A stretch of DNA of 64,000 bases from Paraphysomonas bandaiensis. Lineage: Eukaryota > Protista > Chrysophyceae. The stretch spans positions 62,001 through 126,000 of the forward strand of contig CBFFRP010000379.1 in NCBI GenBank assembly GCA_965644295.1, in the 5' to 3' direction. The position numbers were made by a program, and so were the translations under genes. How positions within the stretch are numbered: position 1 is the first letter of the stretch; every line of letters begins with the position of its first letter. Below the pieces are notes generated by a model. The model was not told the origin of the DNA, did no database searches, and saw nothing but the letters and a program-made list of their open reading frames with translations. Shown here piece by piece: positions 5,385 to 56,563 of this stretch.

Positions 5385-5822
5385 CTGTATTACATGAGGT
5401 ATGAGGTATAATTGAAATTGAGACAGCAAGTAATAATTGCAATTATAATGGATTACATCCTGCGTCAATTAATTGATACGCAGCTCTGCGATCTTATATA
5501 GACACTATCTCAAACAAGGCAGCGAAGCGAGCACGTCTTAACAAGAAAACACGATTCCGCAGCATGAAGCACATGCATCCTACAACCAATAAGGTTAAAA
5601 GATTATTTAGTGGGTCGGGCTAAGATTGCTTCGGCATTTAGAGCAACGCTTTTTACGCATTACTCATCGCCTCCGAAAGGAAATTACAGTTGAGCAACTA
5701 CGGTTAATGTATAGCTACTTGAGCACGTAGTTTGGTATCCATTAATTTCAATTTAATTAATAGGGACAGCAAGTATATTAATAGCAATTATAATTGACTA
5801 CAATCTGCGTAATTTAATCGAC
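5385..5822 (+). mobile_element. Degenerate hAT-family DNA transposon right-end fragments
   Basis: Terminal motif caattaattgatacgcagctctg ends at 5488, followed by a decayed transposase C-terminus (acaaccaataaggtt..gattatttagt..gctaagattg..cgcctc) homologous to 42270-42450 and 56320-56470. Confidence 0.7.
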
Positions 5823-7451
5823 AATATTCAAATACCTTAAAATGCAGCTTTAAATAGCTTACAAATAAGCAAAACTCAACCCCCCACACCATACAACTCA
5901 ACTTCATCCAGCCCAATCTGCATCAGTGAATATAAGCACATCGAAAGTGAATCCACTGAATGTGATGCCCTCGGCCCGCCTGTACACCACATATAACAAC
6001 GATTGTTTGCCTATTGCACGCACTCGTATATTTCTGCACACCACGGTTGCCTGTCATCGCGGTTGTCTGCGTAGAACTTGAACAGATTCTGCGAGAACCA
6101 CTCTATCGCCACCACGCAGACACATATATGTACACAAGTAGGCCTAGCAAGGCATGGCCTTCGCCCCCCCCTTTCAGCCAGTATAGGCGATGAATAGACA
6201 ATGTATAGAGCCACAAAAGTATAGGCGGTCCCCGTTTTCCATATGCCCAGATTTTACTAAAGCTCTATGCATTGCTTTGCTTGACACAACCCCTACACTA
6301 AGACACTCTCTTGGAATGAGACAGATGCCGTGTGTGTCGAATCAGAGTTTTTTCACAAACAATGTAACCACATTAGAAAAATGCAATATCGAAGATTTAA
6401 GAATCGAATAGTTACCTGGGATGAGCTCACAAAATAAGCGTCTGGGCACACAGTTCCTTAAGAATGAAAAATGGAAAAGCAAAGTGTGTGTGAGACCCAA
6501 AGAACTGGAGTGTCATTCCCAGGTAGAGCTCCTGGTGGAGCAGCTTTTACTCTTAGATACTGCCGATACTGCAGATATCGTTCGACTCGATAGGGATATA
6601 AGTATGCTACAGTTATTACAGATCTCGCTACAATAGACTTCTGGGAGTACCACTGGAAGCGTTAAGGCGTTAAGTGTCACTAGAGACTAGACTGAGAACT
6701 AACTACAAACTCCCCATCAAATACACCACCGTGTTTAAGACTACAGGAGCAGTGGGCATAGGGTTGATAGTGTGTATATATCTTGTGGTCTGCAGGGTGT
6801 TGTGACCACTCTGACTACTGGAATATGATGAGAAGAGGGACTGACTAGAGGCTTGCTTCTACCATGTATCTTCGGTCACAACAAGTGTCTCCAGACTATA
6901 AAATGACAGCCTTCAACTGCTGTTTACTCTGTTACACTACGAACAGCTATGTGTATACTGCGGATATGAAATGAAGGTGTGTAGATGTGCTGAACATTCC
7001 CAGATGCCGATAATGGGCACAACAGGCTCATCGCCACACCGGAAGCCTCTGCATCAGTTCCGTTCCTCACTTTTTTCCTCACGCCAAAAAGTGAGGAAAA
7101 GTTGGAAAACTGCACATTTTTCGCTGTATTTCCAGCAAATTCTTGTATTTGAAAATTTACTTTTTTGGTGTGTATTCTCTGTATTTATGGATCAATAGGA
7201 GAAGGAGAATGAAAAGTGATTGGTTATTAGAGCCCATACTCTTTACCATCCGTTTGGATACGTGGTGATGATGATGGTCATAAAAAACATCTTTGTAGTG
7301 GGTGAAGAGTGTGCGTATGTCTGTATATGTTGGCGTACTGTATAAAACTGTAGGTAGATTGTATGGCACAGTGCGTAGAGAGAGTAGCCTACACTGATCC
7401 ACATCCAGTCCGATCATCTCCATATATTATCACCTCCATATCATAAATAGG

Positions 7452-9044: not shown

Positions 9045-9227
9045 GTTCAGACCCAAGGTGACAACATATATTTGTGTCCCTTGTATCTCACAAGCATTAC
9101 GCGATGAATGGGCAGAACTATATCTGCTGACGACTTTCGATATATCACGCTAGTTTCCCGGAGAAGTAGCTCCGGTACTTTTCCCCCAGAACACCACGAC
9201 ATGGTGCGAATCCGACTTTGTTGAGGG
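9045..9227 (-). mobile_element. Diverged 5' fragment of the ribozyme-headed retroposon (head copy 3)
   Basis: Reverse complement ccctcaacaaagtcggattcgcaccatgtcgtggtgttctgggggaaaagtaccggagctacttctccgggaaactagcgtga aligns with 22446 onward. Confidence 0.85.
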
Positions 9228-12497: not shown

Positions 12498-12890
12498 ATT
12501 GATAAGTCTTCTTTGTTGATCTTATTAGCAATTACTATATAACGCTACGAAAGCTCCTTGTGCGTCGCCACGAGCATCAAGGTGCGACCACTTCCGTTCG
12601 TGTATGTAAGGGAGAAGCTCTCTATGGACGTGAGTCCTTGGAGTGCAAATGGGGTTAGTCAAGGTGGCGTAACTTGTCCCTTGGGGAAGGGCTCTGCAGG
12701 ACTTTTGGGAGGCACAGGATTCTAAATTAGTGAGTCGAGTGCTCCTAGCCTGAGAAACACAAGCGAGGAGGTGGAGTGGGGCTCCTGCATGTCCGGAGAT
12801 GGTGCGCGCCGCGAGTTGGGCCTGGGGCAAAGGAAGAGATGGAATACGTACGCTATCGTACTTCCACTTGTGCAGAGGTATACACATGGG
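12498..12890 (-). mobile_element. 5'-truncated LINE-like remnant ending in structured tail copy A1 (core 12548-12596)
   Basis: Tail core cggaagtggtcgcaccttgatgctcgtggcgacgcacaaggagctttcg. Upstream decayed peptide AQLAARTISG..ARSTRLTNL resembles the post-RT region of I/ingi-group LINEs (weak). Confidence 0.6.
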
Positions 12891-13017
12891 AGAAAAGACA
12901 TGGTGCAGGTCATCTCGTTACACGCAGTTACCGAAGAACCAGTGGTTCCGTCAAAAAACCTGAAGTCAGCAGATGCCAGGTACATCAACATTTCTGCTTG
13001 CTCACGGAGTAATAGAA

Positions 13018-13222
13018 CAAAGGTGGTTGCACCTTAGTGATTGCGGTGACGCACAAGCAGGTTTTGCAGCGTTAAATATAGTAGGATATTAATAGATTTT
13101 GTACTATTAGTTAGTTCAAGTTGAGGTAGACATCTATCTAGCTTGTGACTAGTTTTCATCTAGCTACTAAAAGCTGGTGCTAATTGTCAACGCCTATTGC
13201 AAAAATAATAAGACATTCAAGA
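13018..13222 (+). mobile_element. Retroposon 3' tail copy A2 (core 13018-13066)
   Basis: caaaggtggttgcaccttagtgattgcggtgacgcacaagcaggttttg..cgttaaatatagtaggata..catctagctact..aacgcctattgc..aataagacattcaa; homologous to 22742-22932. Confidence 0.85.
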
Positions 13223-13598: not shown

Positions 13599-14270
13599 AT
13601 ATTGAAAGTCTTCTTATATTTAGCAATAGGCGTTAAAAATCTGCACCAATGTAGTGGCCAGTTGAATGCTAGACAACCTATATTTAGACCTCTACCCATA
13701 ACTAATCAGTACACACTTTTTTATCTTACTATTTAGCGCTACAGAAGCTGCTTGTGCGTCGCCGCAAGCACCAAGGTGCGACCACTTCCATTCTTAATGT
13801 TGATTGTGAGGTTCGCCGTGATGGTGTGTCCTAGGACTCACTGGCGGATGTGATCAGGGGGTCTCCCCTTGGGATGAGATTCCACCGGGCTGTGTGGAGG
13901 TACAGGGTTCTGTAGTAAGGTTCTGAGTGTACCTAGTGTTAGGCGTGTGGTCTGAGAGGTGGGTGGAGGGGTGGAATGTGGCGCTGTGACGGGTAAGTAA
14001 TCAGTGAGCAAAGCAAGTAGTGGAGCGGTCATTTTTGGAGATTTGGTTTGTCTAGTCCCCGTACATTTTTGCGGTCCGCACCACTATCGGAGGAAAATTC
14101 CTTCCCTTATTGAATGTATGAGGGGTGGTTGCAGGATTGTGTCCTTTGAACTCCCCTGAACCTATATGGTGATTCCTTGTGGAGACGAATGCTTACAAGT
14201 GTAGGAATTATTTCTAGCAGTGGATGAAGCTTTTGCTGTCTTAGCCAGTGGCAGAGAACACATGCCAATT
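13599..14270 (-). mobile_element. 5'-truncated LINE-like remnant ending in tail copy A3 (core 13742-13790)
   Basis: Full tail homologous to 22742-22932, preceded by GC-richer decayed coding-like DNA (..PKGRPPD..) similar to the DNA upstream of A6. Left boundary of the upstream part is approximate. Confidence 0.7.
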
Positions 14271-19012: not shown

Positions 19013-21736
19013 ATGAAGTCAGAGACTGCATCCAATCACAGCGATGAGAAGTATAAGAATAAAACATGCCCCTTTACTATAAGTAAAATAAATTTATTTC
19101 GTATATTAACGAGCTCCATTCTATCGATCGTTATAGCGATAGGCGGCTATGGTTCGTACTATGTATTAAGAAATATTGAAAACGATACAATCTATCGACA
19201 ATTTGATTCATATTCAGGGCAAATACAAAATGAAGTACAGAAGTATTTAGTTCGTAATGTGTTGGCTTCGAATGCAATTTCTAAAATATATGCTGATAAG
19301 TGTCCACGTGATTCAGACTGGCCGAATTGTTTATTAGAGCTCGATTTCTTGGAAGCTGTTGCTATTGATATATTTGAACTTGCTGCATTGGATGGTTTTG
19401 CATACAGTGCGGTGATAACGACTGATCAACAACAGGATTTTGAGGATTTTATATATGAACAGTATGGTCAGTATGGAGTCGGACAGTCTTCATTTGGTAA
19501 AGGTATATACGGCCTCAGTATTGATAAAGGGGGACCTGATTACAGGTATAAGGTTGTTAATGGGTCATTCGGACAACCGTATCTAGCCCCTTTGGTTCAG
19601 TTGACTGATTTTAGAAATCTGGCCCCTGCTATTGTACTGTATGATGAATACTCGGAGTATATACGGTACCTTGCCCTCAATGAGATGCGAGCATGTGTGG
19701 AGGCGAAGGAATCCAAAACTACCCACTGTTCGATCCTCTCAGAAATCATCACCTTCCCAGCATCGCTTACGCAGCCAGCCTCAGACATACCCCCGAAGTC
19801 TCTATTATTCACCTCTGTCCAGCCCAAGATTTCAAATAGCTCGGTAGCAACTGGGGCTATTATAACTGGAGTAGAGTGGTCAGCTGTTATAAGTGGCATT
19901 ATCCCTCATGACATAAATGGTATCGAGTGTATCATAGCGGTTAATGGTTTGGAATACATATTCGAGATTAAGAATGGTGATGGAGCTTTCAAGAAACAAC
20001 GGGAATCTCGGAGGGTATGGGGTACTATTGACTGCAAACATTGCATTCCATTGCAATATTTTGATGGGACATCTGTGTACTACTTGTATATTAAACGCAC
20101 GGACGTCTTCGACAGGCAGTACCGAAGCTGGGGACCAGTGATTGCATCTGTTATATTTGTGGTCATGATCGTTATTTTGAGTGTGATATTTTTCGCGTAT
20201 GACGCTTTTGTGAATAAGGAAATCTTTCAGAAGGAGATTATTCTTAATACGAAACAGCTCTTTGTGCGCTATATATCGCACGAGATCCGAACACCCATCA
20301 ATACTATTCATGTGGGAATCAGCTTGCTCTTTAGCGAGATGCGCTCTGCGCTTCAGGATACCACTTTACAAACTGATGTATCGCAGAAGATTAAATATTG
20401 GTTAGATATGATTTTCGACATAGAGACATCCTCTGCATCTGCCATACAGGTACTGAATGATCTGCTGGATTATGAACAAATCCAAATCAGCAAGCTGAAT
20501 ATGGACGTCTCTATGATATCAGTCTGGTCGATATGTGAAAACGTATTTTGGTCTTTCCGTTATAATTTGGAGACCAAACGAATCAAGTATGCTCTGCATA
20601 TGCAAATTATGGACGAGGACGAAAGTAAGGACAGTAGCGTGCGAGTATTCAGCAGTCACCGTGCAGACTCTGTGGATATCGAAGAAGGTGAGGCACAGAT
20701 GGTGGACAGGAAGGAATTCATGAAAAAGCTTGTGGTTATGGGAGATCTAAAGAAGATAGAGCAAGTGATGCGAAATCTGATTAGTAATGCAATTAAATTT
20801 ACTCCTTCTGGGGGGCAGCTGATGGTAGATGTATCATGGGTCCCTGGAGATGATGACCGGTCTGCATCACCTATGAGTATACCTTTGAACTCTATGTTGC
20901 GCAAAAATTTGACCACGAGTAATGGTGTAATTAAAGTGAGTGTATCTGACACAGGCGAAGGTATGACCCCAGAGCAGCAAGAGAGGGTTTTCAATGAGGG
21001 TGTGCAATTCGATGCCAATCGGCTTCAGGATGGAAAGGGGAGTGGCTTAGGCCTGTGGATATCAAAAGGTATCATAGAGGAGCATAAGGGTCATATATAC
21101 GTGGAATCGAAGGGCATTGGACATGGAACGACGTTCACTTTTGAACTTCCATGCTATTATGATGAAACTTTCTCCTTTGTTCCCTACAACAAAGCACATA
21201 CAGTTAATGATGCCAACACCCGTGTGACTAAACAAAAAGATATTAAACACGTTCTTGTAGTTGACGATTCGGTTCCCAATGTTAAAGTGGTTAAGCGGCT
21301 GCTGGCTAATGCAGGATACACGTGTCAATATGCATATAATGGAATGGAATGCCTTGAAAAGCTCGAAAGGGATGATTACCATACGATATGTGATTTGGTC
21401 ATCATAGATAATCACATGCCACTTATGGACGGTCCAGCTGCAGTAAAGGAAATTCGCAAGAGGAAGTATGATGTAGCGGTAATTGGCCTGACAGGTTCTA
21501 TAACTCCAGATGAACTTGAGCACTTCATGTCCTTTGGATGCGATGATGTACTCAGTAAGCCATTGAATATACAGAAGTTGAACGAAACAATTGACGCTCT
21601 TGATAAGTCTGTCCCGCCAGTGGTCTCTGATTTGAATGGCGAGGCTATTATTTCTAATGGCGAAACTGAAACTGACAGCGAAGTTGTTGCAGGTGAAGAC
21701 ATAGCTGTCCCCAGCTACAGAGTCGTGAGAGTTTAG
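19013..21736 (+). CDS. Membrane hybrid sensor histidine kinase (TM, CHASE-like sensor, TM, HisKA, HATPase, receiver)
   Basis: H-box ISHEIRTP, N-box NLISNAIKFT, G1 DTGEG, G2 GSGLGL, receiver LVVDD..IIDNHMP..KP; two TM helices flank the sensor region. Confidence 0.95.
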   Translation: MKSETASNHSDEKYKNKTCPFTISKINLFRILTSSILSIVIAIGGYGSYYVLRNIENDTIYRQFDSYSGQIQNEVQKYLVRNVLASNAISKIYADKCPRDSDWPNCLLELDFLEAVAIDIFELAALDGFAYSAVITTDQQQDFEDFIYEQYGQYGVGQSSFGKGIYGLSIDKGGPDYRYKVVNGSFGQPYLAPLVQLTDFRNLAPAIVLYDEYSEYIRYLALNEMRACVEAKESKTTHCSILSEIITFPASLTQPASDIPPKSLLFTSVQPKISNSSVATGAIITGVEWSAVISGIIPHDINGIECIIAVNGLEYIFEIKNGDGAFKKQRESRRVWGTIDCKHCIPLQYFDGTSVYYLYIKRTDVFDRQYRSWGPVIASVIFVVMIVILSVIFFAYDAFVNKEIFQKEIILNTKQLFVRYISHEIRTPINTIHVGISLLFSEMRSALQDTTLQTDVSQKIKYWLDMIFDIETSSASAIQVLNDLLDYEQIQISKLNMDVSMISVWSICENVFWSFRYNLETKRIKYALHMQIMDEDESKDSSVRVFSSHRADSVDIEEGEAQMVDRKEFMKKLVVMGDLKKIEQVMRNLISNAIKFTPSGGQLMVDVSWVPGDDDRSASPMSIPLNSMLRKNLTTSNGVIKVSVSDTGEGMTPEQQERVFNEGVQFDANRLQDGKGSGLGLWISKGIIEEHKGHIYVESKGIGHGTTFTFELPCYYDETFSFVPYNKAHTVNDANTRVTKQKDIKHVLVVDDSVPNVKVVKRLLANAGYTCQYAYNGMECLEKLERDDYHTICDLVIIDNHMPLMDGPAAVKEIRKRKYDVAVIGLTGSITPDELEHFMSFGCDDVLSKPLNIQKLNETIDALDKSVPPVVSDLNGEAIISNGETETDSEVVAGEDIAVPSYRVVRV

Positions 21737-22445
21737 TATTGTGGAGGAATAGTGTCCTCAGGTGGAGTTCCAGTGGTCTTTACATGATCTATTTCTATAA
21801 TATTAATGTCGAGAGGCATGGATACGTCGATGAACAATATACACACGATAGTACTATTTTACTGTTTCACCCCAAATCTCATGTGTTTGTAGTAGCTAGG
21901 GTATTAATACTTTTTTATATCTGTTAGCAGAAAAAATTATGAAAAGCTTCTTGTGGCTCGAAATAACTTGACTGCTAGTGAAACCTGTAATGAATAAAGC
22001 TTAATTATGTTAATATATAATTATAATTTAGATCACTTTAAGTATTAAGCAAATATCCTGATTCCTGATTGTAGTATTTTGTAGGACAATAGCTGCGTTC
22101 GGAAGTAGATAAAATATCAACAATGGTGACACATTTTGATATAAACACACAGAAATGAAACTATCCGATTCGCTCTATTTGCAAATTTGAGTGGAACGAT
22201 ACAACGATACTTCCTATCCCGAGTTAATATAGTACATTATCCTCAAGATGTTGAAAACCTAACTTCAAGAATGTATAGCTATTAGTAACTTGCTTGCTGT
22301 TGAAGGAAATAGGTGTTCCCTGATTAGCATTATGAAAGCAAAAATGAAAAATCAATGTATAGCTTCAAATCAATAGTATCTACGCAATAAAATGTCAACT
22401 GTACTAGATTAAATACGTTGTTCTGTACTATGATGCGATATAGAT

Positions 22446-22533
22446 CCCTCAACAAAGTCGGACTCGCACCTTTTCGTGGTGTTCTGGGGGATAAGTACCG
22501 GAGAGATTCTCTCTGGGAAACTAACGTGAGCCG
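22446..22533 (+). ncRNA. Putative HDV-like self-cleaving ribozyme (Pr77/L1Tc type)
   Basis: P1 CCCUC-AAC/GUU(CU)GGGGG; P2 CGG(A)CUCG/UGAGCCG; P3 ACC/GGU with loop UUUUCGU; AGUAC; P4 CCGGAGAG/CUCUCUGG; J4/2 GAAACUAA with candidate catalytic C22521. Confidence 0.75.
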
Positions 22534-22932
22534 CAAGCATAGTCAGCAGATAATGTTCTTCCCACTCATAGCCGAATGCTTGTGTGGTACAAGGGACACC
22601 AATAGGTGTCACTTGTGTAGACGTCTTTGGGCCCTGACGAATAAACAGGCATTCGGGACAGGGCCCACCTGCAGGGTAATCGGGGTATTGGGCTGCCTGC
22701 TGAAGTCAAGCATCCGGGATGTTCACCTTAAGGACACAGAACGGAAGTGGTTGCACCTTGGTGCTTGCGGCGACGCACAAGCATCTTCCGTAGCGTTAAA
22801 TAGTAGGATAAAAAAGTGTGTACTGATTAGTTACAGGTAAAGGTCTAGCTAGTTTTTGTCTAGCATTCATCTAGCTACTAAGTTGCTGCAGGTTTTTAAC
22901 GCCTATTGCTAAATAAAAGACTTTTTCAATAT
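22446..22932 (+). mobile_element. Short non-autonomous retroposon (RIME/NARTc-like): ribozyme head, body and LINE-shared 3' tail A4
   Basis: Head 22446-22533 is identical to the minus-strand copy at 55919-56006. Body runs to ~22730. Tail 22742-22932 is shared with five other loci and has an aataaa near its end. No convincing ORF; no TSD identified. Confidence 0.8.
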
Positions 22933-22993
22933 AATATGTTAATATACCTGACATCTGCTGACTTCAGAATTTTTGAGTCCCTAATGTGAACAT

Positions 22994-23053
22994 GTGAACA
23001 GCCCGGATACTTAGCTTCAGCAAGTAGCCCAATACTCCGGATGCTATTGAGGT
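22994..23053 (-). repeat. Inverted diverged fragment of the retroposon body
   Basis: gtgaacagcccggatacttagcttcagcaagtagcccaatac is the reverse complement of ~22686-22727 and matches 55720-55797. Confidence 0.7.
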
Positions 23054-23467: not shown

Positions 23468-25070
23468 TCAGTAAAACCTATTGTCAGTAGTTCTACCATT
23501 ACTAAAGGAGGAGTTGGGTGGAGGATAGGTGTTGTTACTTTCGCTCATTCTAGAAAACCGGGCCAATTCCGTTTCTCTGTCGGGAGGTGCATAAGAAGCC
23601 ATATATCTATTTGCATCAAATTCACCGTCCCCTGATGTGCTGACAGCTGAATACCTAGGGCCTGAAAACGTGGAGGCGAGTGCGTTCTTGAAGTTCCTTT
23701 TCGAAGTTAAAATTAGTTCATATAAAACAGTAACACATAGATATATACGTATATACGCATACACCCAAAACAGCTGACATATACAACATTTAAATAGACA
23801 TACATACAATAACAAGGCAAACATACTTGTAAAAGTAGGCACAGGTACCGCCAACTACCATTACGAGAACAAAAGAGTAGAACATGTACGTGCTGCTCTC
23901 TATGGTCCCACTTCCTCTGTTACTGGAATTCAACAGGACTGTCGTGGGTGAAGAGGAAGGTCTTGATGTTTCAAAGGGAATAGGGTCAGCAAGGGTGGGA
24001 ATCGGTGTAGGAAAGCAAGTAGGCGATGGCGTTGGGGCAGCAGTATCCACAAAAACAGGAACAGGAGTCGGAATTTTCGTCGGAGAGTAGGTGGCGTACT
24101 CCACAGACGGATGCGGGGTGGGGATGCGTTTGGGAGCGGGCGTTGTTGGTGCAACAAAATCGGTTGTTGGAACGGGTGTAGGATAAGCGGTTCTTTTCTT
24201 AGTGGGTGTGGGAGTGGGGGGGTAATCTGTAGGTATTTCTATAAAAAAATCAGTGGTAGGAACTGCAGTAGGTGGGTCTGTGGACTTCTTTGGAACTGGT
24301 GTGGTTGGAGCAACGAAATCAGTGGTAGGAACTGCAGTAGGTGGGTCTGTGGACTTCTTTGGAACCGGGGTAGTTGGAGCAACGAAATCAGTGGTAGGAG
24401 CTGCAGTAGGTGGGTCTGTGGACTTCTTTGGGGCTGGTGTGGTTGGAGCAACGAAATCAGTGGTAGGAACTGCAGTAGGTGGGTCTGTGGACTTCTTTGG
24501 AACTGGTGTGGTTGGAGCAACGAAATCAGTGGTAGGAACTGCAGTAGGTGGGTCTGTGGACTTCTTTGGAACCGGGGTAGTTGGAGCAACGAAATCAGTG
24601 GTAGGAACTGCAGTAGGTGGGTCTGTGGACTTCTTTGGAACCGGGGTAGTTGGAGCAACGAAATCAGTGGTAGGAACTGCAGTAGGTGGGTCTGTGGACT
24701 TCTTTGGAACCGGGGTAGTTGGAGCAACGAAATCAGTGGTAGGAACTGCAGTAGGTGGGTCTGTGGACTTCTTTGGAACCGGGGTAGTTGGAGCAACGAA
24801 ATCAGTGGTAGGAACTGCAGTAGGTGGGTCTGTGGACTTCTTTGGAACTGGTGTGGTTGGAGCAACGAAATCAGTGGTAGGTAGAGGGGTAGGTGGATGA
24901 TTAGCGGGTATATTAATGAAAAATCCTGTTGTCGGTGCAGCAGTTTGATCCTCTTGAGATACTAATCGTTGTGTTTGAGGATATGGTGTAGATGGCATCT
25001 GCTCTATAGATGAAGATGAGGAGAAGTCGAACCATATACATGTATATATAAATATTAACACTGATTTCAT
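23468..25070 (-). CDS. Mucin-like Pro/Thr-rich type I membrane protein, 2 exons
   Basis: Signal peptide MKSVLIFIYTCIWF; nine 23-aa PTTDFVAPTTPVPKKSTDPPTAV repeats; TM YMFYSFVLVMVVGGTCAYFY; intron 23826-23697 joins a cytoplasmic tail ending at 23468. Confidence 0.85.
24248..24881. repeat. 69-bp coding minisatellite, ~9 copies
   Basis: Unit aatcagtggtaggaactgcagtaggtgggtctgtggacttctttggaaccggggtagttggagcaacga. Confidence 0.97.
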
Positions 25071-36959: not shown

Positions 36960-39735
36960 GTTACAATGCTTCCAATTAACATAATATGTAACGACTCAAA
37001 TAAAGCTCAGAAAAGGACTAATCGCAGCGTACCGTGGTCTAGTGGACAACAGCGGTGACACTACACGCCTCATCCAGCTCGACGACCCCAATCACGCTGC
37101 AAACGTCGAAAAGTACACTGAAGAATACATAGAACTCAAAGCAGTTGGTCTCAAACGTAGACCCCGATACAGTTAATGGATCTCCAGCGCCAGCCGCTAC
37201 TTCCAGGGGGAGTGGCGTGAACCTAAGACATCATGATGCCGCGCAGGAGAGAATCAGCAGCCATCGGGATGAACCTACCCACTCCGATGCAAAGATAGCG
37301 AAGACTCGCCCTTCGAAACAATTCAATGGGAATCTAGTGCCGAATCCGCACCACACAGTCGGATCGTGTGTGTCAGCGTGTGGCCAAACGCTGTTACAAG
37401 CCTGCTGATTCATCGGGAAATTGGGGAAATCAGGGTACACCTGAAGGGTCAAGTATTGTCCATGCTACAGCAAAGCACAAAATTTCAGCTGGTAAAAAGA
37501 GTGTTCTCCGAAGCAAGAGAATGGCCAGGAAACGAGTAATAGTAAATGTACACAAACTAGGTGATGGTGTATATACATGTGATGTAAATGCTAAACATGT
37601 AGTAAATCATATGACACATGATACACAATGTATATACAATATTGATATTGTTATGCATGCTATCAGTAATTGCGATGACATTGACGAGCTAACCGATACA
37701 CCAAAGAGTATTCAAGATGCTATTTCAGCTAAATATAAACAGTAGTGAATCGATGCTATCAACAGAGAAATATCCACTCTTCTCAGAGGAAAGGATGCTG
37801 GAGATACACTGCGTTACCACCTGGAGCAAGAGTCATAAAAAAGGGGAAACTCATATTCAAAATAAAAAGAAAACAGAATGATATCAAATTCAAGGCTCGA
37901 CTGGTCGCACAGGGTTTTACTCAAATCCAAGGCATCGATTATAATGATACATACAGCCCAGTCGCGAAGGCTACATCACTACTACGTACAATTATTGCCC
38001 ATTCGACCATTATGAGACTCAGATTGCACCAAATCGATTTCACAACTGCGTACATCAATGCTGACCTCGAAGAGGACATATACATGCATCCCCCTCCTGG
38101 CACGGACGTCCCTGACGGAAAAGTCCTCAAACTGATGAAAAGCATCTATGGTCTAAAGCAAGCAGGTCTTAAGTGGTATAAGTGCTGTACAAATTAATAT
38201 CTAATATCTGACCCGTGTATATTCAAAAAGCAGATTAATGGCAGGATTATGCTAATAGCCATGTATGTGGATGATATTATTATAGCATCTACATCATCCC
38301 ACACTGATATCCAACAATTCAAAGACCATTTATCCAAAAAGTTCGAAATTACGGATCTCGGACTCTTAGATTATTACTTGGGCATTTCCATCCATCAAGA
38401 CTACTTTTTGATAAGAATATCACGACTCTCAGTCAGGAGCAGTATGTCAACAAACTACTGGACAAATTCAATATGTCCAACTGTAAAAACCCATGTCAAC
38501 ACCTATTTTACTTTCCTTCAACTATGATTTACATGAATACAATCATCTTTCAGAGTCAAATCAAAGTTATGTTCAGAATTTCCCCTACAAGGAGCTCATA
38601 GGCTGATGTATCTAGCTGTATGCACTCGACCGGATATCGCCTACGCAGTCAATACTCTCGCCAGATTTTCTGATATGCCTAATCTAACTACCTTTAATGC
38701 TGCGTTACATGTTCTTAGGTATCTCAAAGGCACTGCTAAGCAAGGATTGATATATTCTGGATCCCACATAACATTGTCAGGATACTGCGATAGCGATTGG
38801 GCACGATGTCACCTCACTCGACGGTCCACCACAGCTTTTACATTCTTCATAAGTAATTGTCTTATATCATGGCAATCTCGATTACAGACAACTGTGGCAT
38901 TGTCATCTACTGAAACTGAGTATATGGCTTTATCGTCAGCAGCTCAGGAAGCATTATGACTACGCTCTTTATTATCAGAAATTGGTTTCAAACTTCCATT
39001 CTCAACAACTATTTGGTGCGATAATAAAGGTGCAGTCCAATTATGTTACAATCCTACTCATCATCGACGTGAACACATTGCGGAGAACATTTTGACTGTG
39101 GATCATATATCCACAAAGTCAATGTTAGCCGACCTCCTTACGAAACCACTAGGAGCAAATAACTTCCGCACATTGCGAACTACATTGATGGGGGGAGCTG
39201 GGTTCGACATCCCATCCAGCAGCAACAGAAAGCGATCAACAACCTCAGAGACACCTAAATCACAATTACCAAGCCACAAGCGACCTAGGTGGCTAGTTTG
39301 AGTTACACGGAGTTTTTACCATTTTTTTTTACTTTTATTTCAATACATGATGCTGGACTAGAAGGATGGTCTCACAATATGGCATCTCTGCAGTTCGCTT
39401 ATTATTGACTAGTGACTGCTCCTCTGGTTTTTACTCTCAGTGTGTATAAGTTCATATTCTCTCTATTATCTACGGTTCACTGATTATTTCATTGAGGGGG
39501 CGTATTAGGATTCAGCTTAATACATGATTGTATCTGTGAGTTATAATGTTCAATGAAATATACCATGAACTGAATTAGAGAGAGTATCTGTCGAAGATAC
39601 GTGATCGTCATCATAACGTCGTCATTATCAGTTACACTTCTAACTATTCCGTTGTGCATGATAGCTACGTTCTATATTGTTATTCATAATTTTCACTCTA
39701 TCGTGTTCATTACTTACACTATAATAATCACAACA
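36960..39735 (+). mobile_element. Decayed 5'-truncated Ty1/Copia LTR retrotransposon (RT, RNase H, PPT, putative 3' LTR 39503-39735)
   Basis: FKARLVAQGFTQIQGIDYNDTYSPV, QIDFTTAYINA, KSIYGLKQAG, MYVDD, TRPDIAYAV, GYCDSDWA..RRSTT, QTTVALSSTETEY and ADLLTKPL, broken by stops and frameshifts. PPT ttgagggggcg at 39492-39502 is followed by tatta..caaca. 5' boundary approximate. Confidence 0.93.
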
Positions 39736-42049: not shown

Positions 42050-42566
42050 AGTAGACAATTTTGTAAGCGCTAGTTGAATCGTGTTGAGAAGTTGCGACAA
42101 AATACTATTATGTTCAGCATCGATAGCTAAATAACGCCAAGAGCAGTGAAAACCTATTCTATTATTTGGGACAGCAAGTAGTAATTGCAATTCTGCTAGT
42201 TGACTACAACCTACGTCAATTAATTGATACTCAGTCTTGAGTGAAATACAAAGTAGCATGAAACACTTGCATGCCACAACCAATAAGGTTCTTGAAAGGT
42301 TATTCAGTAGAGCTAAGATTGTTATGACGGATTTGCGCAAGAGTATGACTCCTCGGCATTTGGAGTTACTGATGTTTTTACGCATGAACCGTCGCCTCTG
42401 GAATGAAAAGACAGTTGAGGTAGCTATATTGGCAGCTAATGTAGTTTAGTATGAAATAATTGCAATTAAGTGCAATAGTTGAAATTGAAACAGCAAGTAA
42501 TAATTGCAATTATAATTGACTACAACCTGCGTCAATTAATTGACAATTAATTGATACGCAGCCCTG
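42050..42566 (+). mobile_element. hAT transposon 3' remnant with transposase dimerisation-domain fragment and right TIR
   Basis: TTNKVLERLFSRAKIVMTDLRKSMTPRHLELLMFLRMNRRLW (hAT C-terminal ERxFS motif); terminus caattaattgatacgcagccctg at 42566. Confidence 0.85.
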
Positions 42567-51854: not shown

Positions 51855-54768
51855 ATGATTAATATTGCCGGTACAACACCTGTAGATGATCCCTCATATA
51901 GGTATAAGATGCCACGGATCATACCTAAAGTAGAAGGTAGAGGGAATGGTATTAAGACCGTGTTAGTTAATGTATCTGATATTGCAACTGCGCTGAATCG
52001 GGATGCATCAGAAATTACAAAGTTTTTTGGATGTGAATTAGGTGCACAAACGACAATGAGTGTGGATGATGACAGATATATAGTCAATGGTGCTCACAGT
52101 ACGGGTGATCTTCAGAACTTTATGCATCGTTATATAGAGTCTTTTGTCCTGTGCAAAAACTGTCGTTTGCCTGAGACTCATTACAAGATCAAGAATGGGA
52201 TCATCTGTCAAAAGTGTATGGCTTGTGGCTCTAAGGACCCCTGTGATATGACTCATAAGCTTACCACGTTTATTCTAAAGCAACACAAAAAGGCAAAAGA
52301 GTCAAAAGACAAGGAGTCAAAGAAAGACAAGAAGAAGAGCAAAAAGTCGAAGTCAAAGGATGAAGGGGAAGCGAAGGAGGAAGAAGAAGAAGACAGCAAA
52401 CCAGCTGCATCCAAGGTGAAGAAAGAGAAGAAAGTGAAGAAGAAATCGAAGTCGAAAGAGGAAGTTGCAGAGGAAGAAGATGAGGACGTTGAGATGGATA
52501 CAGAGAGCGAGGCCACAGGTACACATTGATTCATGACAGAAATTTACATGTATAGTTGTATGGTATAGTAGTGAGGAATGGTAATGGTGAGAGTTTCTGT
52601 TTGTTCTGGGAAATTGAACCCTCCTAGAAGCACAGTCACTTATGGACCACAACCTGAACAGATATCTGAACTATACCGTACTGTTGTTATGTGATATATA
52701 TGTAGTTGTATGGTATAGTAGTGAGGAATGGTAATGGTGAGAGTTTCTGTTTGTTCTGGGAAATTGAACCCTCCTGGAAGCACAGTCACCTATGGACCAC
52801 AACCTGAACAGATATCTGAACTATACCGTACTGTTGTTATGTGATATATATGTAGTTACATGGTATAGTAGTGAGGAATGGTAATGGTGAGAGTTTCTGT
52901 TTGTTCTGGGAAATTGAACCCTCCTAGAAGCACAGTCACTTATGGACCACAACCTGAACAGATATCTGAACTATACCGTACTGTTGTTATGTGATATATA
53001 TGTGGTTGTATGGTATAGTAGTGAGGAATGGTAATGGTGAGAGTTTCTGTTTGTTCTGGGAAATTGAACCCTCCTGGAAGCACAGTCACTTATGGACCAC
53101 AACCTGAACAGATATCTGAACTATACTGTACTGTTGTTATGTGATATATATGTAGTTGTATGGTATAGTAGTGAGGAATGGTAATGGTGAGAGTTTCTGT
53201 TTGTTCTGGGAAATTGAACCCTCCTAGAAGCACAGTCACTTATGGACCACAACCTGAACAGATATCTGAACTATACCGTACTGTTGTTATGTGATATATA
53301 TGTAGTTGTATGGTATAGTAGTGAGGAATGGTAATGGTGAGAGTTTCTGTTTGTTCTGGGAAATTGAACCCTCCTAGAAGCACAGTCACTTATGGACCAC
53401 AACCTGAACAGATATCTGAACTATACCGTACTGTTGTTATGTGATATATATGTAGTTGTATGGTATAGTAGTGAGGAATGGTAATGGTGAGAGTTTCTGT
53501 TTGTTCTGGGAAATTGAACCCTCCTAGAAGCACAGTCACTTATGGACCACAACCTGAACAGATATCTGAACTATACCGTACTGTTGTTATGTGATATATA
53601 TGTAGTTGTATGGTATAGTAGTGAGGAATGGTAATGGTGAGAGTTTCTGTTTGTTCTGGGAAATTGAACCCTCCTAGAAGCACAGTCACTTATGGACCAC
53701 AACCTGAACAGATATCTGAACTATACCGTACTGTTGTTATGTGATATATATGTAGTTGTATGGTATAGTAGTGAGGAATGGTAATGGTGAGAGTTTCTGT
53801 TTGTTCTGGGAAATTGAACCCTCCTAGAAGCACAGTCACTTATGGACCACAACCTGAACAGATATCTGAACTATACCGTACTGTTGTTATGTGATATATA
53901 TGTAGTTGTATGGTATAGTAGTGAGGAATGGTAATGGTGAGAGTTTCTGTTTGTTCTGGGAAATTGAACCCTCCTGGAAGCACAGTCACTTATGGACCAC
54001 AACCTGAACAGATATCTGAACTATACTGTACTGTTGTTATGTGATATAGTTTATATGCGTTCAAGATTTGTTGAATGTCTATTTTTCTAATCTATACTTA
54101 CTGTTTTAGATGCTGCGATTGAGCAATTCAAGCTCTGGCTGAATAATAATATATCCCCATCTCCGGCTACTGGTGTTCTTCTGCCGAAGCAGCAACATCT
54201 TGCAGCTGTCGTTGAGGAACTGCGGTCGATTCAGACGCTGTCGTCGTTGCGTCCTTCTGATAGGGCTATAATTTACATCGGTGCAACATTTTCCCCTACG
54301 TCCATAGCAGACAATGATGTTAAGAAGCACAAGGATGTGCTTGGTATGCTTGCACCCAAGGATAATGAGATTCAGCAACGTCATCTTATTGCGGTATGTC
54401 TTAAATAAGCATTCTTGCACTCACGCTGTTGTATATGCTACGCCAATTCAATCGTATCTTTTGTAATTTATCTTGAGCAGGCTGCGGAATGGTTCTGCGG
54501 TACTCGCTATCCCGATTTGCTTCGTATGTTTCCTGTGCTGTTGAAGCAATTGTATGATGAAGATTTGGTAGAAGAAGAGGCTTTCTACGCCTGGCATACG
54601 GATCTTACCCGTAATGAGTTTACTGCCGAGCAGAGCATGATAACTCTGGAAACGTTGGAGCAACTCAAAGAAGCTGCCCAACTCTTTGTTGTCTGGCTGC
54701 AAGAGGCAGATGAAGAAGGGGATAGTGAGGACGAGTCGGGGGAAGATGATGACGAGGAAGATGCCTGA
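51855..54768 (+). CDS. EIF5: Translation initiation factor 5, 3 exons
   Basis: DDPSYRYKMP..KVEGRGNGIKT, TKFFGCELGAQ, zinc finger CKNC..CMACG, Lys-rich linker and W2 domain LYDEDLVEEE..W..WLQEA. Introns 52519-54109 and 54394-54480. Confidence 0.96.
52551..54048. repeat. 150-bp tandem satellite, 10 copies, inside eIF5 intron 1
   Basis: Exact 150-bp period visible in the sequence; units differ by only a few substitutions. Confidence 0.99.
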
Positions 54769-55656: not shown

Positions 55657-56563
55657 CAGGGCTGCGTATCAATTAATTGAAATTAACTGTCAATTATTGA
55701 AATTTCAATAATTGAAATAGGGATGCTTGACTTCAGCAGGCAGCCCAATACCCCGGTTACCCTTCAGGTGGGCCCTGCCCCGGATGCCCTTGAGGTCGGA
55801 TGCCTGTTTATTCATCAGGACCCAAAGACGTCTACACAAGTGACACTTATTGGTGTCCCTTGTACCACACAAGCATTCGGCTATGAGTGGGCAGAACATT
55901 ATCTGCTGCCTATGTTTGCGGCTCACGTTAGTTTCCCAGAGAGAATCTCTCCGGTACTTATCCCCCAGAACACCACGAAAAGGTGCGAGTCCGACTTTGT
56001 TGAGGGTGATAATGGATGATCTTCCCTTTTCTTTCGTGGAAAAAACATTGACACGACAGAACACCAGGTTGAGTAATATTATAAGATCAATATTAATGAG
56101 GTATATGTAGAAGTCTTGAACTTAGAGGTCGAATGCAAGATCAAAGAAATGCTTCCAATGCATTTCGGTTTGATTGTTGATGGATGGAAGCAAGGAACGT
56201 GATGGATGATGGCTAGTTCAGAATGACGACGGAGTGCAACATTAGATTGATGGTAGCAAGCAGCGGAATCGAGCACATCTGAATCAGCAAACTCGTTGCC
56301 ACAGTATGAAGTACTTGCATGCCACAACAACCAACAAGGTTGAAAGATTGTTCAGTAGAGCTAAGATTGTTGTGACTGATTTGCATTTAGAATTACTTAT
56401 GTTATTACGCATGAACCGTCGCCTCTGGAATGAAATGACAGTTGAGGTAGCTATATTGGCAAGTAATGTAGTTCAGTACTAATTGCAACAATTGAAATTT
56501 AGACAGCAAGTACTAATTGCAATATTAATGACTAGAACCGCAATTAATTGATACGCAGCCCTG
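55657..56563 (+). mobile_element. Non-autonomous hAT element with both TIRs and a nested retroposon
   Basis: TIRs cagggctgcgtatcaattaattg / caattaattgatacgcagccctg (23-bp perfect); transposase C-terminal remnant at 56310-56470; no matching TSD. Confidence 0.85.
55720..56006 (-). mobile_element. Ribozyme-headed retroposon copy 2 (head 55919-56006), lacking the 3' tail
   Basis: Reverse complement aligns with 22446-22720. Confidence 0.9.

Follow-up and report, generated by a model that had tools for sequence, protein, structure and literature searches.

The question raised by this locus is whether a self-cleaving RNA of the type that heads trypanosomatid retroposons also stands at the 5' end of a dispersed repeat in a protist of another lineage. 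In the window (i.e., the whole stretch of 64,000 nucleotides analysed here), the candidate, a putative HDV-like ribozyme of the Pr77/L1Tc class, occupies positions 22446-22533 (+), with the predicted cut between 22445 and C22446. A preliminary description of this DNA had placed the same 88-nt head at three sites (22446+, 56006- and 9227-), with homology starting each time at the first C. All three heads were found: 56006-55919 (-) is identical to 22446-22533 (+) over 88 nt, and the 9227 (-) head, damaged (U26 to A) and diverged at the 3' end of P2, retains 88% identity over ~83 nt. The former opens a second retroposon copy, 3'-truncated, at 55721-56006 (-), which adjoins hAT-type remnants; the latter opens a third, older one, also 3'-truncated, at 9069-9227 (-). 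The common start at the first C holds in this trio and reaches well beyond it. Indeed, of the 29 other best full-length matches in the genome, 27 align from this nucleotide onwards and the remaining two differ at the second base. In other samples, moreover, many assembled contigs have a loose end at 22445/22446 (223 in X5 and 110 in X12). The 22446 insertion itself is apparently present in sample X5. Two open reading frames overlap retroposon copies (22418-22840 and 55705-56064); as both start outside the element, they were taken as spurious.

The preliminary description spoke of a non-trypanosomatid protist, and the host is indeed not a kinetoplastid. The elongase gene of the window is 70% identical to its Chlorochromonas danica homologue, the named homologues of the eIF5 gene are Florenciella and Rhizochromulina-like entries (ochrophytes), and the host is probably a chrysophyte-like stramenopile, judging from such gene sequences. 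The window DNA occurs in marine metatranscriptomes. Upstream of the element, a hybrid histidine kinase (HisKA, HATPase and receiver domains; 19013-21736 (+)) ends 710 nt before the head, and its transcript contig stops at 22019, short of the element. Elsewhere in the window, hAT-type transposase C-terminal remnants with shared terminal repeats are found at 42190-42560, 56250-56560 and probably 5400-5830, the 56006 copy of the retroposon sitting among them. The neighbourhood also contains ten tandem 150-bp units of 97-98% identity inside the eIF5 gene (52545-54044), broken copia-like reverse transcriptase/RNase H fragments (37368-38959 (+)) and an ORF resembling a mucin-type surface protein (23790-25070 (-)), in which a Pro/Thr-rich tandem repeat of 69 bp (23 aa) is combined with a hydrophobic segment at the C-terminus.

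The head is followed by a middle body (22534-22737 (+)), non-coding and without an Rfam match, and by a LINE-derived 3' tail of ~190 nt with a short TA-rich end (22738-22932 (+)), for a total of ~485 nt. Directly after this copy stands an antisense fragment of an older, longer subfamily (22934-23039 (-)). A search of the element's own genome (62.6 Mb, 669 contigs) recovered 40 full-length copies, the window's included, of ~480 nt and 91-95% identity. That the repeat is dispersed, as the preliminary description had proposed, is evident from at least 610 genomic matches to the strict head pattern CCCT..CACC..CGTGGTG, versus 5 for the reversed control; the strict tail pattern gave at least 472 matches (control, 0) and at least 156 copies match exactly throughout the first 54 nt, all three figures being lower bounds. 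TSDs of 10-16 bp, mostly 12-14 and with one mismatch allowed, which end exactly at the first C and recur after the tail, abut C1 in 22 of 29 full copies versus 0.27 in shuffled pairs; the window copy at 22446 has no TSD. [quoted passage not shown] Private mutation rates are similar in the head (2.5%) and in the body (2.9%), so that individual copies look neutral. Dispersed, devoid of coding capacity and bounded by variable TSDs and a common 3' end, the element is SINE-like: a retroposon whose 5' end is exact, whose tail derives from a LINE and whose head belongs to the Pr77 class.

Regarding the tail, the last ~190 nt (from 22738) are also found, in the window and at other loci, behind different sequence that ends in a stop codon. 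At 13599-14083 (-), a 5'-truncated LINE end comprises the last 81 codons of an ORF (13841-14083), the stop, a 43-nt spacer and the tail of the retroposon. These 81 codons have matches at the ends of four open frames (2,795, 2,017, 1,782 and 1,605 aa), and the same four frames hold reverse-transcriptase matches 2.1-2.4 kb upstream. Standing behind the ORF stop of frames that bear a reverse transcriptase (RT), the tail therefore represents the 3' UTR of a LINE that resides in this genome and measures roughly 8.5-9 kb. Beyond the RT, scans with PF14529 and PF00075 detected no other domain of this donor LINE, and a search with its C-terminus returned fragments only. Of note, the tail is common to several LINE subfamilies, and two LINE/SINE tail fragments, one with a diverged LINE ORF end, lie back to back on opposite strands at 12533-13217. 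Besides the tail donor, the RT matches of the genome include several non-LTR families that are young and have open frames of 2,000-3,700 aa, as well as many near-identical LTR elements.

A retroposon ending like a LINE could be a classic internal-deletion derivative, of the RIME/NARTc type, of an Ingi-clade LINE with the same head. Its layout, size and TSD length are those of RIME, NARTc and SIDER, and bipartite non-autonomous elements of Ingi are known (PMC5786205), but the searches for a headed donor point elsewhere. The exact head is absent from C143, the contig of the longest LINE frame (2,795 aa), in a list of exact heads that covers this contig; the head pattern in canonical register has six matches genome-wide, five of which are clearly mutated SINE copies and one of which is without the G-rich P1 strand; and a model search of the genome gave no markedly better head, none of the canonical-register ones topping it. 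Exact-head and pattern searches hence found no 5' end common to the retroposon and its tail donor, a LINE known by its coordinates and frame lengths, and we hold an origin by internal deletion, from a parent now lost or with a diverged head, to be unlikely. A tail whose donor LINE yielded no matching head in these searches argues instead for a chimera comparable to the R2/R1 SIDEs.

The head itself was drawn in the preliminary description as a nested double pseudoknot, and every drawn pair can indeed form; what had been missed is that the 3' strand of P1 is 3 nt longer than in the trypanosomatid heads compared below. The 5' strand of P1 (22446-22453 (+)) pairs with a 3' strand of 10 nt (22481-22490 (+); the class norm is 7), in which C22484-U22485 are bulged in the 8-bp drawing. 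P2 joins 22459-22467 (+), with A22462 bulged, to 22526-22533 (+), and P3 (ACC/GGU) encloses a 7-nt L3 (22468-22480 (+)) that begins with U and ends with CGU (C22475-G22476-U22477), U22471 and G22476 standing at the positions of HDV U20 and G25. The single P1.1 pair is made by U22472 and by G22495 of the J1.1/4 segment (22491-22497 (+), class consensus NNNAGUA); it is U-G here, as in 3 of 11 class members, the other 8 having C-G. Within the head, differences between subfamilies are limited to the P4 hairpin (22498-22516 (+), -11.7 kcal/mol), whose pairing they preserve. Finally, J4/2 (22517-22525 (+)) brings C22521 to the catalytic position, followed by A22523 and A22524 in the expected N-A-A arrangement, and leaves C22525 unpaired, a register also seen in the metagenome loci L114, L065 and L082. 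A C in place of G after J4/2 had been considered as a defect and was dropped, three other loci having the same change.

Altogether, P1 can form five pairs, a 2-nt bulge and three further pairs, P2 eight pairs with one bulged A, P3 three and P4 eight, so that with P1.1 all pairs of the nested double pseudoknot are formable. In shuffle tests, pairing was significant for P2 (p=0.009), P4 (p=0.0003) and P1 and P2 together (p=0.0005), P1 alone being not significant (p=0.08). Among 40 sampled heads, 28 satisfy a lenient test for the helices and key bases, and 39 retain C22521, i.e., C76 of the head. The subfamily changes shared among the 29 best copies fall, within the head, in P4 only and preserve its pairing, and the lineage-specific P2 and P4 are fully paired.

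The trypanosomatid ribozymes provide the reference for this fold. Head sequences of L1Tc, L1Tco, TvSIDER1 and LmSIDER2A are available from primers (PMC3185411), text (PMC4748587) and supplement (PMC4035085), and against these sources the L1Tc landmarks given in the preliminary description are correct. Aligned to such heads, the window head has the landmarks in the same order and register: the core and the J4/2 motif agree, as do P4 and the distance that separates AGTAC from the end of P1. In vitro, cleavage at C1 has been observed for trypanosomatid members of the class (PMC3185411, PMC4035085), while several trypanosome Pr77 copies are catalytically dead (PMC4035085). In the four heads active in vitro, P1 is a clean 7-bp helix; in the window head, with its 10-nt 3' strand, no uninterrupted 7-bp P1 stands directly after P3. 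Two alternatives of similar energy are available for P1, namely 5 bp, a 2-nt bulge and 3 bp, or 6 bp and a 4-nt linker, and in the minimum-energy nested fold a competing hairpin forms between the P1 insert and the 5' strand of P2. Both this hairpin and the longer P1 would probably slow down cutting or make it depend on the flanks. The reading of the head as a Pr77/L1Tc-type HDV-like ribozyme is thus upheld by the landmarks and by the predicted cut site, which is the 5' end defined by the TSDs, and it falls short in the 7-bp P1.

This irregularity bears on whether the head still cuts. [quoted passage not shown] Promoter activity of Pr77, with initiation at +1, is established (PMC4748587), dead Pr77 ribozymes exist as mentioned above, and the P3/L3 segment contains a DPE-like CGTG at +30 to +33, near the usual position of this motif (+25 to +28). 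However, the CGTG doubles as L3/P3 of the ribozyme and is therefore not independent evidence for a promoter. Moreover, P2, P4, J4/2 and C76 are intact within lineage-specific sequence, which a promoter acting at the DNA level does not need, and the P1 change affects both strands and adds one pair. We consequently consider the loss of cutting to be unlikely and favour a head that has kept its ribozyme function.

Whether such a head is an isolated case in eukaryotes was addressed in metagenomes. A scan with the core pattern only, the 5' strand of P1, P2, P4 and J4/2 being outside the search pattern, gave 120 loci, most of which are eukaryote-like repeats. Most loci also carry a complementary 7-nt upstream strand of P1, P2, a P4 of 8 to >120 nt and a J4/2 with C at the catalytic position. 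About one fifth of the matches are chance occurrences in GC-rich bacterial genes, without P1 and J4/2, and were excluded from the alignment, as were the poorly aligned or incomplete L112, L069, L101, L104, L144, L081, L105, L177 and the long-P4 family; in viral contigs, the single match is a chance one inside a phage gene. In the alignment of 11 members from unrelated loci, several of which are related to each other so that the cells are not independent events, 95% of cells are paired and 42 double-sided changes are seen, with strong covariation in P1 and P2 (0/500 shuffles; slid controls, 34-46%). A 3' strand of P1 longer than 7 nt is the exception, all but one or two metagenome families being without the extra 3 nt.

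The class members differ widely in what they head. The closest relative of the window head, L166:876-956 (+), has the same segment after P1 and the same bulged A in P2 with a regular 7-bp P1, and is followed by short tandem repeats. L062, L150 and about 40 other loci form an independent, non-coding dispersed repeat of 0.7-1 kb on AT-rich eukaryote-like contigs; it begins exactly at P1 of a regular Pr77-class head, has unrelated flanks and represents a second ribozyme-headed SINE-like family. At L114:4372-4453 (-), a Pr77-class head lies between two tandem copies of an APE-RT LINE, R1-like by appearance, whose 1,133-aa ORF contains PF14529 and PF00078; the class is hence not confined to Ingi. 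L065, L082 and about 20 related loci have an AT-rich P4 of >120 nt, within a longer repeat whose homology extends upstream of P1. In L072, L076, L098 and related loci, a conserved hairpin precedes the head, which makes the ribozyme internal to a larger conserved unit. As many unrelated repeats share the core and its covariation, the class is widespread rather than specific to trypanosomes, and its occurrence outside trypanosomatids, an R1-like APE-RT LINE included, is less surprising.

The metagenome members also served to search with HDV-like models. With models to which the source genome contributed no sequence, the three heads obtain the highest scores in the window (41, 41 and 29 bits; next, 10); the covariance models are partly circular, since the core pattern was derived from the window head. 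With Rfam, no ribozyme, tRNA or other credible match was found in the window or in the element, and the head matches none of RF00094, RF00622 and RF02682. Two class members match HDV-F-prausnitzii weakly over the predicted ribozyme span (E 0.31 and 0.73), and since even these regular members reach only E 0.3-0.7, the Rfam models barely cover the class. Taken by itself, the silence of Rfam would fit a chance resemblance, with the head unrelated to HDV-like ribozymes. Such a coincidence is extremely improbable in view of the >25 class-conserved positions that are in register, the pairing of P2, P3 and P4, and the scores of 40-41 bits versus a background of at most 10.

The reading that we favour, with a probability of about two in three, is that of a three-part SINE-like retroposon whose ribozyme head would, in source copies, cut before C1 and whose RNA would be copied by a LINE protein through the borrowed tail. 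Transcripts may arise at host promoters and read through the element, start at an internal Pol II promoter of the head, or both; promoter and ribozyme functions may coexist, as in L1Tc. The head would then fold into its nested double pseudoknot and cut just 5' of C1, using C76 (C22521) and Mg2+, which is predicted to leave a uniform RNA with a 5'-OH. The LINE protein would bind the borrowed tail and insert the copy by target-primed reverse transcription, with a TSD of 12-14 bp. Two probably-RNA runs contain the element, and some contigs cross its 5' boundary (15 in X8), so that uncut RNA, or DNA, exists; as contigs show neither ends nor strand, they speak neither for nor against cleavage.

Ribozyme-headed non-autonomous elements, in which the ribozyme frees the element from co-transcripts, are an established strategy, and a ribozyme head that frees a retroposon being already well known, the surprise is limited. 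For ribozyme-headed SINEs in stramenopiles, we found no published report within a limited coverage of the literature. Known so far from work on trypanosomatids, the L1Tc/Pr77 class is extended by the present locus to a probable stramenopile and by the metagenome loci to many eukaryotic repeats; in the retroposon described here, the head moves about independently of the LINE that would mobilise the element. If this head cuts, the accepted 7-bp P1 rule is too strict for HDV-like searches, and hundreds of intact copies represent potential cleavage sites in host RNA. A bolder proposal, which we advance tentatively and at well below even odds, is that a chimeric SINE of high copy number has no other head than an active HDV-like ribozyme with a lengthened, bulged P1, and so represents a SINE type that depends neither on Pol III genes nor on a cognate LINE head; its hundreds of competent copies could cut host read-through transcripts, and the metagenome hits suggest that the Pr77 fold is portable and in use in unrelated repeats across eukaryotes.

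It is instructive to compare this retroposon with three known systems. SINEs headed by tRNA, 5S or 7SL sequences consist of a Pol III gene head, a body and a LINE-derived tail. The retroposon shares with them the succession of head, body and LINE-derived tail, the non-coding nature and the TSDs, and differs in having a ribozyme-type RNA head and no Rfam match to tRNA, 5S or 7SL. With the L1TcRz/Pr77 ribozymes of L1Tc, NARTc, ingi, RIME and SIDER, it has in common the C1 start as element boundary, the CACC-N4-CGTGGTG core, the GGG-N3-AGTAC spacing, the single-pair P1.1, P4, the GGAARCYAA J4/2, a TSD of ~12 bp and a short non-coding carrier. The window head departs from them in the 3' strand of P1, which has 10 nt and forms 8 bp with a 2-nt bulge where theirs has 7 nt, and in a C then G after J4/2 where theirs have a G then a bulge; moreover, the element resides in a probable stramenopile, and its tail was donated by a LINE for which the searches gave no such head. 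As the R2/R1 hybrid SIDEs of Drosophila (PMC3414825) do, finally, it joins a head of the HDV-like ribozyme type to the 3' UTR of a different LINE and would be moved by the machinery of the tail donor, with the TSD of the latter; it is distinguished from them by its Pr77-class head, its middle body of ~200 nt and its hundreds to thousands of dispersed copies, the SIDEs being confined to rDNA. The element would thus work like L1TcRz in NARTc and SIDER, and it is built like the R2/R1 hybrid SIDEs.
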